Origin: Anthoceros angustus
Taxonomy: Eukaryota > Plantae > Anthocerotophyta
Assembly: GCA_010909165.1 (NCBI GenBank)
Contig: MU008173.1
Location: forward strand, 1 to 64,000
Length of the DNA: 64,000 bases
Direction of reading: 5' to 3'
The notes beneath the pieces were generated by a model that saw only the letters and a program-made list of their open reading frames with translations, made no database searches and was not told the origin of the DNA. This document shows, piece after piece, positions 42,771-64,000 of this stretch (its first letter is position 1; each line of letters begins with the position of its first letter). The translations under genes were made by a program, and so were the position numbers.

Positions 42771-44443
42771 ATGGCGGCGAAGCTTGTGAGCTCTTGGCAC
42801 CAGCTTGCCAGTAAGGCCCAGGACGCCCACCCTCCGATCTCGTTGCCTTCCTTGTCGTGGAGTACTGGTCACGATGTCACCAAACGTAACTTGCTACGGC
42901 CCGTCTTGGGTCCGGGGAAAGCTCTTCCTACCCGGCTTCGGACGAAATGCGAGTTGTTGGCAACATCCGTCAAGCAGAGGTGAAGAATTCTCGCAAAATG
43001 GATGTGGCAATGGAATTAAGGGGGAACGTAATCGATGCTTGTAGCGGAGTCTTATATTGTTTGTGTTGTGGTTGCAGGGAAGTGGAACCCACCTTGAAGT
43101 CTTCTGCTGGGCAGAACCTTATGACTGACAGAGGTCAACTACAGAGGACAGCCAGTGTGACTAGTGCACCAGCGAAGTTTCAAATTCCCAGAGAACAGCT
43201 GGAGGTTATCGAGTCACTGGATGGCTGGGCTCAGACTTCGCTTTTGCCTCTGCTGAAGCCCGTAGACAAGTGTTGGCAGCCGCAAGATTACCTTCCCGAT
43301 GCATCGTCCGAGAGCTTCTACGAGGATGTGAGAGCGCTGCAGCAAAGGGCACGGGAGCTCCCCGATGACTATCTGGTGTGCCTGGTGGGAGATATGATCA
43401 CAGAGGAGGCTCTGCCAACATACCAGTCTGTTTTCAACACTTTCGAAGGAGTGAGAGACACCACAGGTAGCAGTCCAACACCATGGGGAGTGTGGGTCAG
43501 GGCATGGACAGCAGAGGAGAATCGCCATGGAGATCTGTTGAACAAGTATCTGTATCTTTCTGGCAGGGTGGACATGAAGATGGTAGAGAGAACGACTCAG
43601 CATTTGATTGGCTCGGGCATGGTATGATGACTTATTCTCCCACACCAGCTTCAGAGTAAATTTTTTGTCGGTTAGCATCTTGTTGCCTGCCTTCTGACCA
43701 CGAACTCCGCTTCCTTTCTGCACAGTGACTGGAGCAGCGCAGTGCTGTCTAACTATCGACTGTCACGTCTGCTTGTACTGCAGGATCCCGGAATCGACAA
43801 CAGTCCCTACAATGGCTTCATCTACACTTCTTTCCAGGAGCGTGCTACATTTATTTCCCATGGTAACACTGCCAAGCATGCCAAGAAATTTGGAGAGAGC
43901 AAGCTTGCTACCATCTGCGGGATGATTGCTTCTGACGAGAAAAGACACGAGATCGCCTACACCCGGATCATGGAGCAGCTGTTCAATCTAGACCCTAGTG
44001 GTGCTATGATTGCATTCGAGGAGATGATGAGGAAGAGGATCACGATGCCGGCTCACTTGATGTTTGATGGGGAAAATCGCCACCTGTTTCAAGACTACGC
44101 TTCAGTAAGAAGACCCCTTTCGCATCAGTTCCTTGCTTGTTTGTGTGTTCAACAAGTCTTCATTGTGCGTCTTATACCTTGACCTCTGCTTTCGCAGGTT
44201 GCTCAGCGATGTGGAGTTTATACGAGCAGAGATTATGCCCAAATTATCGAGCACTTGATTCAAGCCTGGAAAGTGGAAGAACGAGTGGGACTCTCCAGCG
44301 AGGCACAGCGGGCTCAGGATTACGTGTGTAATCTTCCCAGACGCATCCTAAGGTTGGAAGAACGAGCTGAGAGCCGATCGCAAAACAGACCTGCCAAAAC
44401 GGCTGCCTTTAGCTGGATTTTCAACAAGGAAGTTGCGTTGTAA
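42771..44443 (+). CDS. SAD: Plastid stearoyl-ACP delta-9 desaturase (exons 42771-42979, 43078-43621, 43784-44104, 44198-44443)
   Basis: Transit-peptide-like exon 1; [86 protein letters not shown] (both di-iron ExxH motifs), [11 protein letters not shown]. Confidence 0.97.
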
Positions 44444-53123: not shown

Positions 53124-54995
53124 ATGGCGGCCGGCTGGAAGGGGAAGTTGAGCAAATGGGCGAGGGCGTCGGCGTCGGCGAGCAGCAGCGAGAGCGGGGA
53201 GGCGAAAATCGTGGTGGGCTTGGATTTCGGGACCACATTCTCGGGCTTCGCGTTCGCGCACAGGGACGAGCCGGACAAGGTGTTCTGCCACTACGAGTGG
53301 CCGGGGCAGGACACGAGCTACTGCAAGACGCAGACGAGCCTGTACTACGAGCGGGAGGGGCCCGGGCCCGGGGCCGAGTACAGGGCCACGCACTGGGGCT
53401 GGGCGGCGCAGCAGGCGCACTTGAAGGAGCTCAAGAGTCAGGGCAGGCGGGTCGGGCCCGGGGAGCAGAGCGCCGGCCTCTTCCTCTTCAAATTCAAGCT
53501 CAATTTGGCGCCGGAGGGGTGGAGGACGGAGCGGCAAGGGCAGGACGCGGCGCAGCTGGATGCGCTGGCCAGGCTACCGGCGGGGATCACCACCGAGGAC
53601 AGCATCACCGAATACCTGGGGAAGCTCTCGGGCTTCGTGATCGAGCATCTCAAGGACAAGTACGGGCCGCACATCACGTCCCGGGACGTGCAGTGGTGTC
53701 TCACGGTGCCCGCGATATGGGAGGATTCGGCCAAGCAGACGATGCGCAGATGCGCCCAGATGGCGGGCATGGCCACCGGGCCTTTCTGCCCGGCGCAGAA
53801 GGCGGGGAGCGCCAGCCCGTTCCCGCTGGTGAGCGTGCTGGAGTCGGAGGCGGCGTCCGTGTACTGCGCGCGCAGATCCAACCAGTTCGCTCTCGGGAAG
53901 GGGGACCAGTTCCTGGTGGCGGACGTGGGGGGCGGGACCACCGACATCGTGGTGCACACCAAGCAGAACGACAGCTCGTCCGATCTCCGGCTGCGGGAGA
54001 CGTTGCAGAGCTCGGGGGACCTCTGCGGGGGCACGCACGTGGACCAGGGGTTTCTGAGATTTCTCAGCCGCAGGATTCCGTGCTTCCCGGATGAGGTGCA
54101 CAGGGTGCCCGCTACTCTCACCAAGGTGCTGAAACGGTGGCTGGAGATAAAGGTGTCGTTCGATGGCGAGGACCAGTGGGGGCCGGAGGAGTTGGACATC
54201 CCTCCCAATCTGTCCAGGGCCTGGAAGAAGTACGATGCCAGGATGGGATACCGCTCTGAAAACCACGACGAGATGGAGATCAGGGCGAGCGATATGCGGG
54301 CCATCTTCGATCCTGTGGTGGATAGGATCATTGCGTTGATCGGGGAGCGGCTGACTCTGGAGGTGAAGATGATGCTGCTGGTGGGTGGCTTCTCTTCCTC
54401 GCCGTATCTCAAGCTGAGACTGAAGGCTGCCTTTGCCGGGCAGCTGGGTGATCGGATAGTGACCCCGCCGGATCCCGGCAGCGCTGTGTGCCAAGGGGCC
54501 GTCTTATTCGGCTTCGCGCCGGAGGTGGTCATCTCCAGGGTTAGCCGCAAAACGTACGGGATCCAGCAGATGCGCAGGTTCAAGCCTGGGGATCCCCCTG
54601 CTTACGAGACCATGTTGCGGGGGAGGGCCTACTGCAGCAACACCTTCACGCCCTATGTGCGGAAAGGTGAGGAAGTCCCCATTGAGCACTGCGTCAAGTG
54701 CAAAGGGAGCCCTTCTGTGCTTGGCCTCGACACCCTCAACATCAACATTTACAGCTCGGATGAGCAACAGGTGCGCTACACCACCGACGATGGAGTGAAG
54801 CTGGAGGCTACCTTCAGCATGGACATATCTGACGATCCTAAGAAACTGGATCTGGACAGGGTAGTGGAGCTGTCCATGTACTTCGGATTGTCGTGCATTC
54901 AGGTTCGGGCGCGGCGCCTCAATTTCGGTAATCGGAATGAGGTGGTTGAGATGCACGATGTCATCGGCTTGACACTCGAGACAGCCGACGTTTGA
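53124..54995 (+). CDS. Atypical Hsp70 (HSPA12-like actin-fold ATPase) copy 1, intronless, 623 aa
   Basis: VVGLDFGTTFSGFAF (phosphate 1), WCLTVPAIW, LESEAAS, DVGGGTTD (phosphate 2), CGGTHVD, LLVGGFSSSPYL (adenosine), AVCQGAVLFG, SRVSRKTYG. No canonical DVLLLD linker, helical lid or EEVD. Confidence 0.88.
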   Translation: MAAGWKGKLSKWARASASASSSESGEAKIVVGLDFGTTFSGFAFAHRDEPDKVFCHYEWPGQDTSYCKTQTSLYYEREGPGPGAEYRATHWGWAAQQAHLKELKSQGRRVGPGEQSAGLFLFKFKLNLAPEGWRTERQGQDAAQLDALARLPAGITTEDSITEYLGKLSGFVIEHLKDKYGPHITSRDVQWCLTVPAIWEDSAKQTMRRCAQMAGMATGPFCPAQKAGSASPFPLVSVLESEAASVYCARRSNQFALGKGDQFLVADVGGGTTDIVVHTKQNDSSSDLRLRETLQSSGDLCGGTHVDQGFLRFLSRRIPCFPDEVHRVPATLTKVLKRWLEIKVSFDGEDQWGPEELDIPPNLSRAWKKYDARMGYRSENHDEMEIRASDMRAIFDPVVDRIIALIGERLTLEVKMMLLVGGFSSSPYLKLRLKAAFAGQLGDRIVTPPDPGSAVCQGAVLFGFAPEVVISRVSRKTYGIQQMRRFKPGDPPAYETMLRGRAYCSNTFTPYVRKGEEVPIEHCVKCKGSPSVLGLDTLNINIYSSDEQQVRYTTDDGVKLEATFSMDISDDPKKLDLDRVVELSMYFGLSCIQVRARRLNFGNRNEVVEMHDVIGLTLETADV

Positions 54996-55293
54996 GGGCT
55001 GGCTTGCTCTCGGTTCCACGATTTTGAAGCCCTTCCCTGGCCCCGCAGTCCTGATCAGATTGGGCGGCTGCATTCACGACATCTGCGGATAGATATCTGT
55101 TTCGTTCCAAGGTGTACGAAGCCCTACAGATTGTCTCGGTAGCCTGATGAAGAAAAGGAAGAGCATTTGAAGGCCAGAGGAGGTAAGCCGTCCAGGTCTC
55201 CACAAGTCAGACCTGCGTGTAAAGATGCAGCTTCTGGATACCTCCTACAGCTGTGTGTGAGCAATCCACAACTCTCGAAAAAGCGCCCGACCA

Positions 55294-57566
55294 TTAAGTT
55301 GACTGCTTCCCACTACCATCTTCAGGAGCAGGAGCTAAGCACCTTGAGGAGGGAGAAATTTGAGAGTACACTTCACTTTTTATGATGACTTTCCCTACAC
55401 GGAAGCCCGGAACAACCATGAATGCCACTTTGGGAAGGAAAGGTTGTTCATCTTCATCCACAATGTTAGCCATGTACAGAGGATCCAAGTCTGCTCCACT
55501 ATCCACTCCAAAGATCCTTGCACTGGGCAGAAAGGAGAGAGCCAACCTTTGCAACAGCCACACCGCCGTTGCAAGAGCCACGAACCTTCTGTAGTAGGGG
55601 TGGTTAGTTTGTTGACATGTCGGTACAAGCTGTTCAGGAGTGATGCTTAGAAACTTGCTACGAGCAAATTGTACCATCTTACTGCTGGAGTTGGCCGGGT
55701 TCAGGTCCACCACCGTTTTGTGGGACTTGAGCTGCTGGAATTCCTCGAAGAAGGCTCCGTGAGGCTTGTCCAGATCCCAAGGTCCTTGCTCGCAAAACCC
55801 ATCAATCTCGAAGCCTTGGAACATGGCAGTAGATATGACATAGGCCGCAAGGTACTTGTGGTGGGTAGACCTTGCAAATCTCGTCCTGCTGATCACTCCG
55901 GAATCTCCATAGGGCAAACCCGCTTTCTCCATCACCGTGCCATACTCCTTGGCAAACAGCAGCAGCTTGTCTTTCACTATCCTCACATGATCATCCAGCA
56001 GCACAGGTGTTGCTTCACCGTCAGTGTATGCTCCGGAGCTCGACGTTCTTGCGTTACTCTGTTCCCACAGCCTCGTCAGCTTCTGCACCTGCTGCTGCCC
56101 AGCCCTTACCTCCTCCTTCAGCTTTTCTTTCTCCAGCTCGTTCTTGCTCCTCAACGTCTCCTGGTAGGTTGCCCGCTGCATATACGGCTTCGGTGATTCG
56201 GTCCTGGTTGGAGACCCGTACTGATCGTAGCGAGTGATATCATCCACAGATAACCCTCTCCGATCGAGGGAGTCCCAAGTTCTCATATCATCCGGCGTTC
56301 GCCATCTGTGATCGACAGACTGCACTAGGGCGCCGCTACCTTGAAGCTCTTGCTGCATCTCGGTCACACTGGCGTTGGAGTGACGATTCTGCTGTGCTCG
56401 CTTCATCTCCGGTAGAGCCAGCAGTATCTCCAGTTGCCTGTGATACTCCACAGCCTCCGAAACAAACGCTGAAATGTGGTTGCTCCAGTTCTTCAGATGA
56501 GAAAGAACATCAGCTGTCCCTTCCCTCTGCCTGGGGTGGTACCCGCGAGCGTCATCCAACGAGTCTGTTCGTCGATGGCCGTGGCTTTGCTGAATCTGGG
56601 CAACTCGGTTCTGAGGATGGGCAGACGCCGGGGCAAGTGGTCCCCTGGAAGAATCTCCCAACCGCTCCCGTTCTGCAATCATGCCATCAGCTGTCCTGGC
56701 AGGTAGCTCCACCAGACCTCTACATTTGAGCTCTTGCCTTGCCTGGAAGGCCAACTCTAGCATCTTTTTGCATCCAGCTTCAACATTGTCCAGCGCAGAT
56801 AGATACTGATTGGGTACTTGGCCCAGCACCCTCGGGGCTGTATTCTCGTACCCTTTTCTATCTGTAATCCGGGCCGATGTGAGTGGAGCCAACTGCTGCA
56901 GCAAAGATGTTAAAGGTTGGGTCGGAATGACTTGGACTGAGGTAGAGGAAGTGTAATCCCCAGCTCTTGATGACTGGAGAATCGACTATTGTTCAAAACA
57001 GAAAGCACAGGTCAGTCAGCATTCCACAAAATTCGTCTTCTTCCGTAACTTTGTACAGCATTGCCAGAGCTTGATCCGCCTTGCAAGTCTAGGACAGTAC
57101 CTCGTTACCTTCGGCGCCATCTAGCATCTTTTTGCATCCAGCGTCAACATTGTCCAGCGAAGATAGATACTGATTGGGTACTTGGCCCAGCCTCGGGGCT
57201 GTATTCTCGTACCCTTTTCCATCTATCCGGGCCGATGTGAGTGGAGCCGACTGCTGCAGGAAAGCAGTTAAAGGTTGGGTCGGAATAACTTGAGCTGAGG
57301 TAGAGGAAGTGTAAGCCCCAGCTCCTGATGACTGGAGAATCGACTATTGTCCAAAAGGGAAAGCACATGTACAGGTCAGTCAGCTGCATGCCACAAAATT
57401 CTCCTTCATCCGTTGCTTTGTACAGCATTGCCAGAGCTTGATCCGCCTTCCAATTTCAGGACAGTACCTCGTTATCGCTGGTGCCATAGCCAAACGCCTC
57501 TTGTCCCTGCTTCTTCGAATTTTTCTGCTTCACGGTGCCGAACACCGTCTTCCACGTCCACGCCAT
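55294..57566 (-). CDS. GIL1/IRKI-family coiled-coil protein with GrpE-like C-terminal head, about 677 aa (exons 57566-57468, 57343-57101, 56985-55294)
   Basis: Spliced ORF starting MAWTWKTVFG; central coiled coil (ELEKEKLKEEVRAGQQQVQKL); KYLAAYVISTAMFQGF, FFEEFQQLK, FARSKFLSI, YYRRFVALATAVWLLQRLALSFLPSARIFGVDSGADLDPLYMANIV...KVAFMVVPGFRVGKVIIKSEVY, matching the GIL1/IRKI C-terminal consensus. Both introns (124 and 115 nt) are GT-AG with a CTGAC branch motif and are phase 0. Confidence 0.8.
56757..57487. repeat. About 365-bp tandem duplication (intron plus exon) inside the GIL1/IRKI-like gene
   Basis: CTAGCATCTTTTTGCATCCAGC...GATAGATACTGATTGGGTACTTGGCCCAGC...GACAGTACCTCGTTA begins at 56757 and again at 57121. 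Confidence 0.9.
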
Positions 57567-57885
57567 ACCTCCTCTGCAGATGGTTCCAGCAAGCCGTGAA
57601 GTAAGATTGGAGGTAGTGGTGGAGGCAAGTCTCCCGCATGAACCGCGTGCGGCGGGTGGAGGCAAGTTGCGAGCAAGAGCGCATTGCCTGCCTGCCTTAT
57701 CCTGGGAGCGTGCACCTTGCTCTAGGACTTTGACATGGTCTTCAATTGTTTATGAAGAGAGCCAGCCTACCCCGCATGTGCCGTGGCAGAGCGTAGTTGG
57801 CGTGCATTACAAACCTGCCAGTTTGCGGGATCGCGGGCAAGGGAAGGGAAGGGTCGGCAGGGCAGAGCTGTCCTTTGCTGTTGCA
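57567..57885. promoter_or_regulatory. Putative 319-bp bidirectional promoter between the GIL1/IRKI-like gene and Hsp70-like copy 2
   Basis: Divergent ATGs at 57566 (-) and 57886 (+). No canonical nGAAnnTTCnnGAAn heat-shock element seen. Confidence 0.5.
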
Positions 57886-59697
57886 ATGTCGACGTCGGAC
57901 TCGGCCGGGGTGGAGGTCCGGGTGGTGATCGGGGTGGATTTCGGGACCACATTCTCGGGCTTCGCCTATGGTCACAGAGACGAGCCGGAGAAGGTATTCA
58001 CCTTCTACGAGTGGCCGGGGCAGCTGGGCAAATCCTACTGCAAAACGCCCACCAGCATCTTCTACTTCAACAACGGCACGGCGGACGCGCCGGAGTACGA
58101 GGCCACGCTCTGGGGATGGCCCGCGCCGCTGCACAACTTGAAGGAGAAGGAGATGAACCTGGCGCACGGCGCGCTGGTGACCCAGTTCAAGCTCCTCCTG
58201 GCCCCGGGGCCCGGCAAGCTCGGGAGGCTGCTCTCCAGATCCAGGGGATCCGGCTCCGGATCCAGGCGTGGCGGGAGGAATGAGGAGCCGGAGACGGCGG
58301 ACATCCTCCCGGGGGTCACGGCTGTGCGGGCCATCACAGACTACCTGGGCAGCATCTGCAGATTTGCGCTGGCGCACGTCCAGGCGATCTACGGGGAGGC
58401 CAACGTCACGGCGCAGCAGGTGCAGTGGTGCCTCACAGTGCCGGCAATCTGGGACGATGCGGCCAAGCAGGTGATGAGGAACTGCGCGCAGCGGGCCGGG
58501 ATCGTGACGGGCCCGCTCTGCCCCGCCCGGGAAGGGGGCAAGGCCAGCCCGCATCCCTTGCTCATCGTGCTCGAGTCCGAGGCCGCGTCGGTCTACTGCG
58601 CCACGAAGCGGCAGCTGCTGCTGGTGAGGGGAGATGAATTCTTGGTGGCGGATGTGGGAGGGGGGACGGTGGACATCGTGGTGCACACCAAGGACAGCGA
58701 GGAGGGGGAAGACCTGGTGCTGCGGGAGATGCGGCAGAGCAGCGGGGACTTGTGCGGGGGGACGTTTGTGGACACGAATTTCCTCAGGTTCGTGAGCGGC
58801 AGGATCCCTTGCTTCGATGATGTGGTGGCCACCAGTCCGGGTGTGAAGACGGTGATGTTGCGGAGGTGGGAGGAGGTGAAGGCGGTGTACGGAGGGGACG
58901 AGGATCTGGAGCCGCAGGGCCTGGAGATCCCGGCCAAGCTGCGGAGGGAGATGAGGAGGCGGAATCCGGGAGGGGAGTGCGACGAGCTGGAGATCTCGAG
59001 GGAGGACATGGCTGGGATCTTCGACCCCGTGATCGACCAGTGCATCGGGCTGATCCGGCAGCAGCTCACGGCGCGCACCAGGGTGCTGCTGCTGGTCGGA
59101 GGGTTCTCGGCGTCTCCGTATCTGAGGAACAAAGTGCGGGCAGCCTTCCAGGAGGAGCTGGGAGGGAGCATCGTCATGCCGCCTGATCCCGGCAGCGCCG
59201 TGTGCCAGGGCGCTGTCCTCTTCGGATTCTTCCCCCGGACTGTGGTTTCTAGGGTTTCCCGCAAGACTTACGGCATCCAGGAGCTGCTGCCGTTCGAGCC
59301 TGGTGATCCTGAGGATGCCGCTGTGAGCACGGCGGGAGGAAAGAGATGCGGTACTCGCTTCACCCCTTTCGCGCGGAAAGGGGAGCCCATCGGGATTCAT
59401 CAGTGCGTCCAGCACAGCCTGTACCCTCAGTTTAAAGGACAGAACAGCTTAGCTGTGCGGATTTACAGCTCCAGTGCCGCGCAAGTGCGCTACACCACTG
59501 ATCCTGGTGTGGAGATGGAAGGGGAATTCATCATCGATATCGCTGACGATGCGGAGGGCCTAGGCTTGGCTCGCCATATCGTAGTGTCCATGTTTTTTGG
59601 GCTGTCCTGCGTTGAAGTGAAGGCGCGGCGCATCAATTTCGGCGACCGGTCTGAGATCATCCCACTTCACGACACCATCGGGTTCGAGCACTCCTGA
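57886..59697 (+). CDS. Atypical Hsp70 (HSPA12-like) copy 2, intronless, 603 aa
   Basis: VVIGVDFGTTFSGFAY, WCLTVPAIW, LESEAAS, DVGGGTVD, CGGTFVD, LLVGGFSASPYL, AVCQGAVLFG, SRVSRKTYG. The ATG at 57886 is preferred over the GTG-started extension in the ORF track. Confidence 0.88.
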   Translation: MSTSDSAGVEVRVVIGVDFGTTFSGFAYGHRDEPEKVFTFYEWPGQLGKSYCKTPTSIFYFNNGTADAPEYEATLWGWPAPLHNLKEKEMNLAHGALVTQFKLLLAPGPGKLGRLLSRSRGSGSGSRRGGRNEEPETADILPGVTAVRAITDYLGSICRFALAHVQAIYGEANVTAQQVQWCLTVPAIWDDAAKQVMRNCAQRAGIVTGPLCPAREGGKASPHPLLIVLESEAASVYCATKRQLLLVRGDEFLVADVGGGTVDIVVHTKDSEEGEDLVLREMRQSSGDLCGGTFVDTNFLRFVSGRIPCFDDVVATSPGVKTVMLRRWEEVKAVYGGDEDLEPQGLEIPAKLRREMRRRNPGGECDELEISREDMAGIFDPVIDQCIGLIRQQLTARTRVLLLVGGFSASPYLRNKVRAAFQEELGGSIVMPPDPGSAVCQGAVLFGFFPRTVVSRVSRKTYGIQELLPFEPGDPEDAAVSTAGGKRCGTRFTPFARKGEPIGIHQCVQHSLYPQFKGQNSLAVRIYSSSAAQVRYTTDPGVEMEGEFIIDIADDAEGLGLARHIVVSMFFGLSCVEVKARRINFGDRSEIIPLHDTIGFEHS

Positions 59698-60409: not shown

Positions 60410-61950
60410 AAGAAGATGAGAGTTTGTACCTTGACTCCGGTGCATCCCAGCATTTCAGTTATAACCTACCTTAGTTCTCAAGCTATGAGGTATTGCTAGA
60501 GGGGCATACAGTGGCACTTGGTGACAATAGGTCACATGACATGACATCAAGGGAAGAGGAGTGTTCCGAGTCCATTTTCCAGGAGAACAGTCTACAGGTA
60601 TTAAGGACGTGCATCATGTGCCTCATCTTGCGAGGAATCTTCTTTCTGTCGCAAAAATCGCCAATGCAGATCATGAGGTTGTGTTCAATTCCAAAAGAGT
60701 TCGGATCCAATCCGAGGAGCCTGAGTTATCGAATGCTAAAGTGGTTGCTAGGGGCGTCCGAATAGAAAATTTGTATAAGTTGTGTGCTTCCGTGGGAAGG
60801 CAAACTTGCACCTTTATGGACAGTTCGCAAAATAGCATTGGATCTATTGATTTATGGCATCAACGTCTGGGGCACATTGGTGTCAACAATATCAGGTTGA
60901 TGAAGAATCAACATATGGTCACAGGCTTGGATTTGAAAGAAGTGGGTGAGCCACAATTATGCCAAGGGTGCATAATGGAAAAGCTAAAGCGAACCAAGTT
61001 CCCAAAGATTGCAGCGCGACGAGCAAAGATGGTGATAGAGTTGGTACACACGGATGTGTGTGGTGCAATGAAAAATCCCACTCATGGCGGAGCCCGCTAC
61101 ATTCTGGTGTTCGTGGATGATTTCACCAGGAAGACCTGGACATATCTTATGAAGGAGAAATCCCAGGTATTTACACTCTTCAAGGAATGGAAAGCCATGG
61201 TGGAGAATGCAAGTGGACAACGTATGAAGACTTTGCGTAGTGACAACGGAGGTGAATACATCTCCGCTGACTTCCAACGCTTTTGCAAGGAGCATGGAAT
61301 TGGGAGGCAACTAACCATCCCTCACACACCGGAGCAAAATGGAGTGGCGGAGCGCAAACTTAAGAGTCTGGTGGAGGTAGCTAAATGCATGTTACATCAT
61401 AGTGGCTTGGAAGTACGTTTTTGGGGTGAGGCTGTTGTTACAACAACCTATGTTTTGAATCGAGTTCCAACCAAAGCTATTGTTGGAATGACCCCGGAGG
61501 AAGCGTGGTCTGGCGTCAAGCCCGACATAAGCCATTTGAGAATCTTTAGTTCAGTGGTTTATGCTCACGTTCCGAAGCAAACCCAAACAAAATGGGATCC
61601 AAAAGGCATGAAGTGCCTAATGCTTGGATACTCTACTGAGATTAAGGGCTACCGGTTGTCTAATCTTTCAAGGAAGAAGATCATGTTTAGCAGGGACGTA
61701 CGTTGTATTTAATGAGGTTGTGGAACCCATTAAAGGAGTGGGAGCTCCAATCCCAATGGTTATCATGAAGGATCCGACGACGTATGTTGACAACCCTGAT
61801 GAGGATTCTGAGTATGATGACACTCTTGAGCAACCTGCTCCTGAGCCCAACGAACCTTCTCAACAACGCGATATAGAGGGGGGAGAAAGGGAAATTCCCG
61901 ATGTCGTGGTTCGAGAAGTAGATGAAGATCAAAGCATTGTCGTAGTTGCT
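60410..61950 (+). mobile_element. Ty1/Copia internal fragment (protease, GAG-pre-integrase, integrase); RT/RNase H and LTRs not seen
   Basis: YLDSGASQH; VPHLARNLLSV; LWHQRLGH; CQGC; ELVHTDVCG; VFVDDFTRKTW; LRSDNGGEY; PEQNGVAERK; SRDV. Frameshifts at both ends. Confidence 0.9.
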
Positions 61951-63009: not shown

Positions 63010-63262
63010 CACTAGGTTGAGGATTTGCACACCTATCTTTTGACCATGATCTTCCGAAGCCGAAAGCCTGGAACAACCATGAACCCAACTTTGAGCGGGG
63101 CCATGTCAGACTCCTCCTCCTCACCGTTATCCGCAATCCTTGCCATGTACCGCTCGTCAACACGGCACTAGGATCTTTGCTCTACGGGGAAAGGAGAGAG
63201 CCAACCTCTGCAATTGCCACAGAGCAATAGCTAGAAGCACAAACCTCCTCAAGGCCTCATGA
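63010..63262 (-). pseudogene. Decayed C-terminal fragment of a second GIL1/IRKI-GrpE-like gene
   Basis: HHEALRRFVLLAIALWQLQRLALSFPRRAKI-(frameshift)-DERYMARIADNGEEEESDMAPLKVGFMVVPGFRLRKIMVKR*V. Aligns with 55340-55580. Confidence 0.8.
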
Positions 63263-63266
63263 TGAG

Positions 63267-64000
63267 TCACAATTCGAGGGTGGAGGCCATTTCGACCGTC
63301 TCGTCAGTGTCACCGAAGTTGAGTCGTCGAGTCTGAACGCGGATGCACGACCTGCCGAAGAACATGGACGTGGTCCATTTGCGCGCCATACCTAGCATCT
63401 CGGGATCCTGCGAGATGTCCATTCTGTACTCGCCTTCCAGAACCACGCCGGGCTCGGTGACGTAGCGCACCATCAAGGCGTCTGTGCTGAAGATGCGAAA
63501 TCTTACACCGGTCTGGTCTGCACGACCGGGCCATCCGGGAAGCGAGAAGCATTCATCCACGCCAACGTGCTGTCCCTTGCGCACGAAGATGCTGAACCTG
63601 TGCATGCATCGCCAACCCAAGGAATCACCCCATGCCCGATGGCTGGAAGGATCCAGTTCCTCATCGAAGGCACGCATCACCTCCAGGCCGTAGGTTTTGC
63701 GGGACACTCTGGAGGTGACCAGGTCGGGGGAGAAACCGAAGAGGACAGCTCCTTGGCACACGGCGCTACCGGGATCTGGCGGCATCACGATCGCTTTGTC
63801 TCCTAGCCTGCCTGCCAATGCTGCCTTCACTCTGTCCCGCAGGTAAGGAGAGGCAGAGAAACCGCCTACCAGCAGCAGCTGCTTCAGGCGCGGGGTTATG
63901 GCCTCCCGAATGAGCTCTATGATCCTGTCCACCACAGGGTCGAAGATTTGCTTCATATCCGACACTGTGAGCTCGATCTCAGCGAAGTTCAGGTCCACGT
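63267..64000 (-). CDS. Atypical Hsp70 (HSPA12-like) copy 3, 3' part only (runs off the window)
   Basis: IFDPVVDRIIELI, LLLVGGFSASPYL, PPDPGSAVCQGAVLFG, SRVSRKTYG, SMFFGRSCIRVQTRRLNFGD...LEL*. Clear paralogue of copies 1 and 2. Confidence 0.86.
   Translation of the reverse strand, partial: VDLNFAEIELTVSDMKQIFDPVVDRIIELIREAITPRLKQLLLVGGFSASPYLRDRVKAALAGRLGDKAIVMPPDPGSAVCQGAVLFGFSPDLVTSRVSRKTYGLEVMRAFDEELDPSSHRAWGDSLGWRCMHRFSIFVRKGQHVGVDECFSLPGWPGRADQTGVRFRIFSTDALMVRYVTEPGVVLEGEYRMDISQDPEMLGMARKWTTSMFFGRSCIRVQTRRLNFGDTDETVEMASTLEL

Follow-up and report, generated by a model that had tools for sequence, protein, structure and literature searches.

The window (the whole stretch analysed: 64,000 nucleotides of Anthoceros angustus, positions 1 to 64,000 of contig MU008173.1, assembly GCA_010909165.1) carries on its minus strand, at 55294..57566, a three-exon gene for a 677-residue protein of the plant GIL1/IRKI family, which lies between two genes for putative Hsp70-fold ATPases. 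The present analysis concerns the C-terminal domain of this GIL1-like protein, which an original prediction had read as the beta-head of the exchange factor GrpE. The open reading frame (ORF) at 55294-56904 of the minus strand has 536 codons, the last ~100 of which occupy 55294-55600. Over 55100-57700, contigs of the public run X1, whose type is guessed to be RNA, revealed two joints, 57468|57343 and 57101|56985. The skipped stretches, 124 and 115 nucleotides long, both have plus-strand ends of CT..AC, corresponding to GT..AG on the minus strand, and define intron 1 (57467-57344) and intron 2 (57100-56986) between exon 1 (57566-57468), exon 2 (57343-57101) and exon 3 (56985-55297). The joined exons read through without interruption for 677 codons, starting with the ATG at 57566 and closing with the stop codon at 55294-55296. 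The contigs are spliced, and therefore processed transcripts exist for the gene; the transcript extends to at least 57700. A reading of the gene as a pseudogene was ruled out by the intact frame and the spliced contigs.

Exon 2, in the poorly conserved N-terminal half of the protein, repeats the start of exon 3 as a tandem duplicate of 81 codons. The duplication comprises the first 81 codons of exon 3 and the intron that precedes them, the two copies of the coding part being at 57101-57343 and 56743-56985 of the minus strand. A tblastn search with the ORF gave 83% identity at 57262-57113, and the repeat can also be read in the translation and is contained in a spliced X1 contig. The duplicate is used as exon 2 in that contig, and therefore the protein has an 81-residue N-terminal repeat. 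Other X1 contigs over the C-terminal half of the gene (55447-56106) have 7-28 mismatches and a word depth 8-14 times that of the exactly matching contig. These derive from paralogues, at least one of which appears more abundant in that run.

The protein is a true member of the plant family of GIL1, IRKI and COST1 by its C-terminal domain. Pfam GIL1_IRKI_C (PF24994, a domain often accompanied in the family by DUF641, PF04859) matched residues 464-513 of the 536-residue ORF (E value 3.9e-9; 36.8 bits against a cut-off of 27). Relatives were sought with an exhaustive search, because the word-indexed protein search with the ORF or its C-terminal region found nothing. Queried with the last 307 residues, this exhaustive search returned 196 proteins at E ≤ 1e-3, among them proteins of Riccia, Calypogeia, Ceratodon, Physcomitrium, Selaginella, Ceratopteris and Welwitschia, the closest being 48% identical. 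The homology spans residues ~20-285 of the 307-residue piece (~260 residues) and usually ends at the C-termini of the relatives. All 109 relatives that were aligned also matched PF24994. DUF641 was present in 35 of them, whereas the window protein has no Pfam match to it. A quick tree splits the family in two with 98% support: a compact clade of 44 rows, which holds the DUF641-bearing members that were checked (P0097, P0003 and P0011), and a long-branched part of 65 rows, in which the window protein falls. The GIL1_IRKI_C domain is conserved across the family, the members of the DUF641-bearing clade included. The window protein differs from GIL1, IRKI and COST1 in lacking a detectable DUF641 and in its N-terminal exon duplication.

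The C-terminus of the ORF reads as a helix, YYRRFVALATAVWLLQRLAL, followed by G-A-D-L-D-P-L-Y-M-A-N-I-V, an acidic loop, and K-V-A-F-M-V-V-P-G-F-R-V-G-K-V-I-I-K-S-E-V-Y. The helix and strand residues quoted in the original prediction match the end of the ORF exactly. AlphaFold2 was given the 307-residue C-terminal piece with the alignment of 109 sequences, and the resulting model had a predicted local distance difference test score (pLDDT) of 88.2 and a predicted template-modelling score of 0.80. Along the chain it shows a helix of 49 residues, another long helix, a group of short helices, a helix of 21 residues and six strands. The first of these, at residues 11-59 of the piece (pLDDT >90; 56041..56187, minus strand as are all elements of the model; residues 381-429 of the full protein), is probably a coiled-coil stalk. 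The family profile matches keratin coiled coils there (E 1.6e-5), the stalk aligns in order with that of human GrpEL1, and the coiled coil that had been claimed upstream of the domain is accounted for by this helix. The second long helix (residues 71-99; 55921..56007) packs back on the stalk. It is followed by a helical subdomain of about 100 residues without a counterpart in GrpE (residues 106-201; 55615..55902), a stretch to which hhalign aligned nothing of GrpE, by the last helix before the head (YYRRF...QRLAL; residues 207-227; 55537..55599), which pairs structurally with the last helix of GrpE, and by the head itself, six short strands at residues 234-287 (55357..55521). The Pfam GIL1_IRKI_C match, at 55366-55515, lies within the head. 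The ~370-residue extension that precedes the modelled part is probably disordered, and by eye no organelle-targeting signal is obvious in it. The last 97 residues, modelled separately, gave a pLDDT of 87.

In structure searches with these models, GrpE was the only family at the top. A Foldseek search of the PDB with the last 97 residues returned GrpE chains for all of its first 12 hits (E 0.017-0.3, probability 0.77-0.99), which span Thermus, human GrpEL1, M. tuberculosis, Geobacillus and E. coli, whereas the thirteenth hit was at E 3.6 and probability 0.01. A second aligner, VIA-align, was run with the same 97 residues against 48,161 chains and placed the four GrpE representatives at ranks 1-4 (Z scores of 6.6, 5.5, 5.3 and 4.2). 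The next chain was at Z 3.5, and only 27 chains reached Z ≥ 2. The pairing matched residues 15-93 of the domain model with residues 116-195 of E. coli GrpE, nearly free of gaps. With the whole piece as query, Foldseek placed GrpE chains at ranks 1, 2, 4, 5, 9, 11, 15 and 40 (E 0.5-2.5), and in VIA-align, against the same 48,161 chains, GrpEL1 came first (Z 6.2), 155 of its 161 residues being aligned in order at a root-mean-square deviation (rmsd) of 17.6. The GrpE clusters of the Atlas matched the head domain at a template-modelling (TM) score of 0.56; the Atlas models of the GIL1/IRKI/COST1 family gave 0.67-0.73. Sequence identity in the structural alignments to GrpE was 11-19%. The predicted GIL1-like C-terminus has the beta-wing fold preceded by a helix, and the match is exclusive to GrpE. 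The weight of the fold evidence, for a predicted structure, is in this exclusivity at the top of both lists, the scores themselves being modest.

The sequence comparison points the same way. In a Pfam scan of the 109 C-terminal segments at E ≤ 10, GrpE (PF01025) was the sole foreign family to match more than one member. Its weak matches were to seven of the relatives, the best (P0055) at E 0.0019 and 18.3 bits, below the cut-off of 25.8, with residues 63-103 aligned to Pfam GrpE positions 117-157, 41 to 41 and free of gaps. For a profile-profile comparison we assembled 13 diverse GrpE sequences, 12 from genes in plasmid-collection records and that of E. coli; a word search and a contig scan for GrpE had yielded Enterobacteriaceae only. 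The family C-terminal alignment matched this set by hhalign over 54 columns, with a score of 34.0 (P 6.5e-5). As a control, 200 column-shuffled GrpE alignments scored 9.9 ± 2.0 (maximum 17.7) and the reversed alignment 16.9, so that the real score lies ~12 standard deviations above the shuffles, and its register is the same as that of the structural alignment. The comparison pairs a-x-I-F-x-V-x-x-G-x-x-F-x-x-x-Y-M-E-S-V with v-x-x-i-x-x-x-G-x-x-F-D-P-x-x-H-x-A-i, and k-V-g-F-m-V-x-P-G-F-r-v with t-V-v-x-v-x-q-x-G-Y. The signal was seen only with the diverse set; against an alignment of near-identical enterobacterial GrpEs it was insignificant (16 columns, probability 0.4). A phmmer search of the PDB sequences with the ORF gave nothing useful, and the whole-piece profile gave coiled-coil noise only. 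The spacing of G..(F/L)DP and G(Y/F)x(L/V) that the original prediction had taken from the GrpE head pattern is the very register of the 54 columns. Thus two structural aligners, a profile-profile comparison and recurrent weak Pfam matches all bear out the likeness that it had proposed, and we consider the head very probably homologous to the beta-wing of GrpE.

The likeness to GrpE, GrpEL1 and Mge1 is one of predicted order as well as of fold: a long stalk helix, shorter helices and a C-terminal six-stranded beta-wing. The shared register of the head is G-x-x-(F/L)-D-P-x-x-(H/M)-x-(A/S/N)-(V/I), followed by V-x-(F/V)-x-V-x-x-G-(F/Y)-x-(V/L), and a basic residue stands three positions before the last strand in both. 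In the window protein these motifs appear as L-D-P..M-A-N and G-F..K. In human GrpEL1, D171-P172 of the F-D-P motif and A177 contact mortalin (PMC11685456), and the L-D-P of the window protein is the counterpart of this D-P. The GIL1-like protein differs in having the ~370-residue N-terminal extension and in lacking the R-P-A of the last strand of GrpE. The partners differ too: that of GrpE is the DnaK-type Hsp70, whereas the candidate partner of the GIL1-like protein, with a putative exchange activity, is of another type and is encoded next to it.

Three putative Hsp70-fold ATPase genes lie in this part of the window, which we take to be of the HSPA12 type from the N-terminal signature of that family. 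Copy 1 (53124..54995, plus strand) is tail-to-tail with the GIL1-like gene, with ~300 bp between the stop codons. Copy 2 (57883..59697, plus strand) is head-to-head with it, the two ATGs, at 57883 and 57566, being 316 bp apart. Copy 3 (63270-63989, minus strand) runs off the window and was matched by tblastn at 52%. Directly downstream of its stop codon is a relic of a second GrpE-like (GIL1/IRKI) head (63039..63267, minus strand), which matches residues 433-465 and 473-509 of the 536-residue ORF at 61% and 51% identity (tblastn). The match of copy 1 to Pfam HSP70 is weak (20.6 bits, exactly at the cut-off), and copy 2 is below the cut-off. By eye, the motifs DFGTT, DVGGGT(T/V)D and VGGFS can be read in the translations, the second as DVGGGTTD in copy 1. 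Copy 2 is 50% identical to copy 1, and copy 1 is 39-43% identical to neighbours annotated HSP70 at two loci of relatives, L086 (Calypogeia fissa) and L089 (an ENA contig).

The linkage was surveyed at eight other loci of relatives with at least 10 kb readable on one or both sides; P0001 and P0004, whose contigs are too short to show neighbours, and P0003 and P0055 were left out. An HSPA12-type sequence lies within 10 kb of the relative at three of the eight: in Calypogeia fissa, in Riccia fluitans (L085), where it is a fragment, and on contig L089, with a neighbour of 39% identity over 635 residues. The relatives with such neighbours fall in three separate subclades of the tree, and the idea of a single HSPA12-linked subfamily was dropped, the tree not uniting them. 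At the Calypogeia fissa locus we also noted an unannotated second GIL1-like copy (L086, 3629-4426, plus strand), ~6 kb upstream of the annotated copy P0012 and head-to-head with a 605-residue gene annotated HSP70/DUF8340. The adjacency of a GIL1-like gene to Hsp70-fold ATPase genes resembles that of grpE to dnaK in the bacterial records examined, and as a sign of partnership it is suggestive. HSPA12-type Hsp70s are not known to have co-chaperones, and a divergently transcribed neighbour with a GrpE-like head is a candidate for such a partner.

Taken together, the locus may be explained as follows. The product of the GIL1-like gene would be a plant GIL1/IRKI protein of the cytosol, built as a stalk with a head, whose last ~90 residues, the helix and the six-stranded head, are probably homologous, though with great divergence, to the helix and beta-wing of GrpE. 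Ahead of these residues, the predicted coiled-coil-type stalk helix and the further helices would follow the GrpE order, with a helical insertion of ~100 residues. By analogy with GrpE, the protein would most likely form dimers through its stalk, with the head set on a partner ATPase at its nucleotide-binding domain. The likeliest partner to be bound would be the HSPA12-type ATPase encoded on either side, the nucleotide release or turnover of which would change. An exchange-factor function of this kind is plausible by the same analogy, and the HSPA12-type neighbours, here and at the three other loci, are circumstantial support for it. We tentatively regard a GrpE-like stalk-and-head protein acting on the neighbouring HSPA12-type ATPase as the best explanation of the locus as a whole, at just short of an even chance; that the head regulates the nucleotide cycle of an Hsp70-fold ATPase is possible, and here our judgement inclines somewhat more to doubt. 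The matter is of interest for the family at large. GIL1, IRKI and COST1 influence gravitropism, cell polarity, autophagy and the shape of the endoplasmic reticulum (ER), and the family is without an agreed biochemical activity. A stalk and head of the GrpE type suggest one, namely that of a dimer docking on a nucleotide-binding domain and altering the turnover of the nucleotide.

Several observations weigh against this explanation. The GIL1-like protein is not a GrpE by the Pfam criterion: it is below the threshold of PF01025 and does not match that family even at E ≤ 10. The C-terminal family profile found no GrpE among the PDB sequences, and nothing at all at E ≤ 10, and the family hidden Markov model did not match E. 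coli GrpE alone. The probability given by hhalign is only 64% and covers the head alone, the helices not being confidently aligned. No Foldseek match reached E 0.001, the TM score is ~0.4 and Z is below 8. The rmsd is 7 Å for the domain and 17.6 Å for the whole model, which means that the helix and the head are set at different angles, and the agreement is limited to topology and local geometry. Relative to GrpE, the second helix is separated from the helix that leads into the head by the ~100 additional helical residues. At the contact motif, D and P are kept at those columns in only ~32% and ~29% of the relatives. As for the neighbourhood, no HSPA12-type gene was found within 10 kb at five of the eight loci (Selaginella, Ceratodon, L084, L090 and L103). 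Finally, the partners reported from angiosperms are not Hsp70s, being the GTPase RHD3 (PMC13189119) and the kinase IRK (as cited in 10.64898/2026.08.17.745269).

The last three of these points favour a different use of the same head, in which the family, with a head derived from GrpE or of the GrpE fold, has been re-used as dimeric coiled-coil adaptors for other partners, for example dynamin-like GTPases, receptor kinases or autophagy proteins, and the HSPA12-type neighbours would owe their position to chance tandem duplication at the locus. A biochemical study of Arabidopsis COST1, which it assigns to the DUF641 family, reports a dimer in vitro that joins RHD3, a dynamin-like GTPase, in a heterotetramer and stimulates the GTPase activity of RHD3, with the C-terminal domain of COST1 placed next to the GTPase domain in a model (PMC13189119). 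The IRKI proteins have a polar, cortical location and are linked to the kinase IRK (preprint 10.64898/2026.08.17.745269). By analogy, the mechanism of COST1 resembles that of GrpE, but its partner is not an Hsp70; a docking dimer of the kind proposed here would also fit the reported effect on RHD3. The adaptor use leaves the retention of a GrpE-type head and stalk order unexplained. Moreover, the adjacency to HSPA12-type genes recurs in the three subclades, outside the present genome it is seen in two or more liverwort species, and the pair in the window is closely head-to-head, which speaks against a duplication accident. We give this alternative serious, if minority, weight.

A second alternative keeps the exchange activity and directs it, as the original prediction had proposed for the whole family, to the ordinary Hsp70s of the cytosol and the ER (Hsc70 and BiP) in place of the HSPA12-type neighbours. 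The same fold evidence would serve it, as would the conservation of the head in all parts of the family, DUF641-bearing members included, and angiosperms appear to lack HSPA12-type genes. However, cytosolic Hsp70s already have the Bag, Hsp110 and Fes1 exchange factors, the neighbourhood signal favours the HSPA12-type genes, and neither our results nor the literature found connects Hsc70 or BiP with a member of the family. In the searchable literature GrpE is not named together with COST1, GIL1 or IRKI in any paper; GrpE and DUF641 meet in one paper on an unrelated topic, which names each once and neither in the title or abstract. We consider this alternative decidedly unlikely, and an Hsp70-factor role for the whole GIL1/IRKI/DUF641 family goes beyond the evidence. 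Convergence or chance, by which a helix followed by a small beta domain would have come to resemble GrpE in a few residues, would suit the low TM score, Z score, identity and hhalign probability, but is very unlikely in view of GrpE alone heading both independent structure searches, with scores falling off sharply below it, of the profile score far above the shuffles in the structural register, and of the seven relatives that match Pfam GrpE independently.

Beyond plants, the arrangement of the helical subdomain recurs in the Atlas models of animal MIEAP/SPATA18 (PF16026) and of Mucoromycota proteins, and these may belong to a wider class with GrpE heads. MIEAP shares the predicted helical subdomain and head with the GIL1-like protein (whole-model TM 0.46 over 184 residues, rmsd 4.4; head TM 0.54) and is a language-model neighbour at 0.82, and the Mucoromycota proteins reach a whole-model TM of 0.53-0.55 (Atlas clusters). 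These TM scores are borderline, and the two groups differ from the plant family in giving no sequence-level match; MIEAP was absent from the 19 families that the 109 C-terminal segments matched, and from the top 25, by number of matches, of the 155 families with longer segments. One may conceive of the plant GIL1/IRKI/DUF641 proteins, animal MIEAP/SPATA18 and the Mucoromycota proteins as a single cytosolic superfamily derived from GrpE, ancestrally a nucleotide-exchange or cycle factor of orphan HSPA12-type ATPases and later turned to further nucleotide-binding partners, RHD3 among them, a proposal that we regard as improbable. Within the plant family, a GIL1_IRKI_C tail is joined to an SMC_N/AAA_23 ATPase head in the gene model of P0060 (Physcomitrium patens, 981 residues). 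If this model is real, the GrpE-like head sits on another coiled-coil ATPase.

Two further coding segments were identified in the window. Between HSPA12-type copies 2 and 3 lies an ORF of a copia-type plant retrotransposon (60561-61712, plus strand), with GAG-pre-integrase, integrase core and SH3-like domains. An exon-sized ORF at 42947-43627 of the plus strand matches FA_desaturase_2, of the stearoyl-ACP desaturase type, at E 1e-68.

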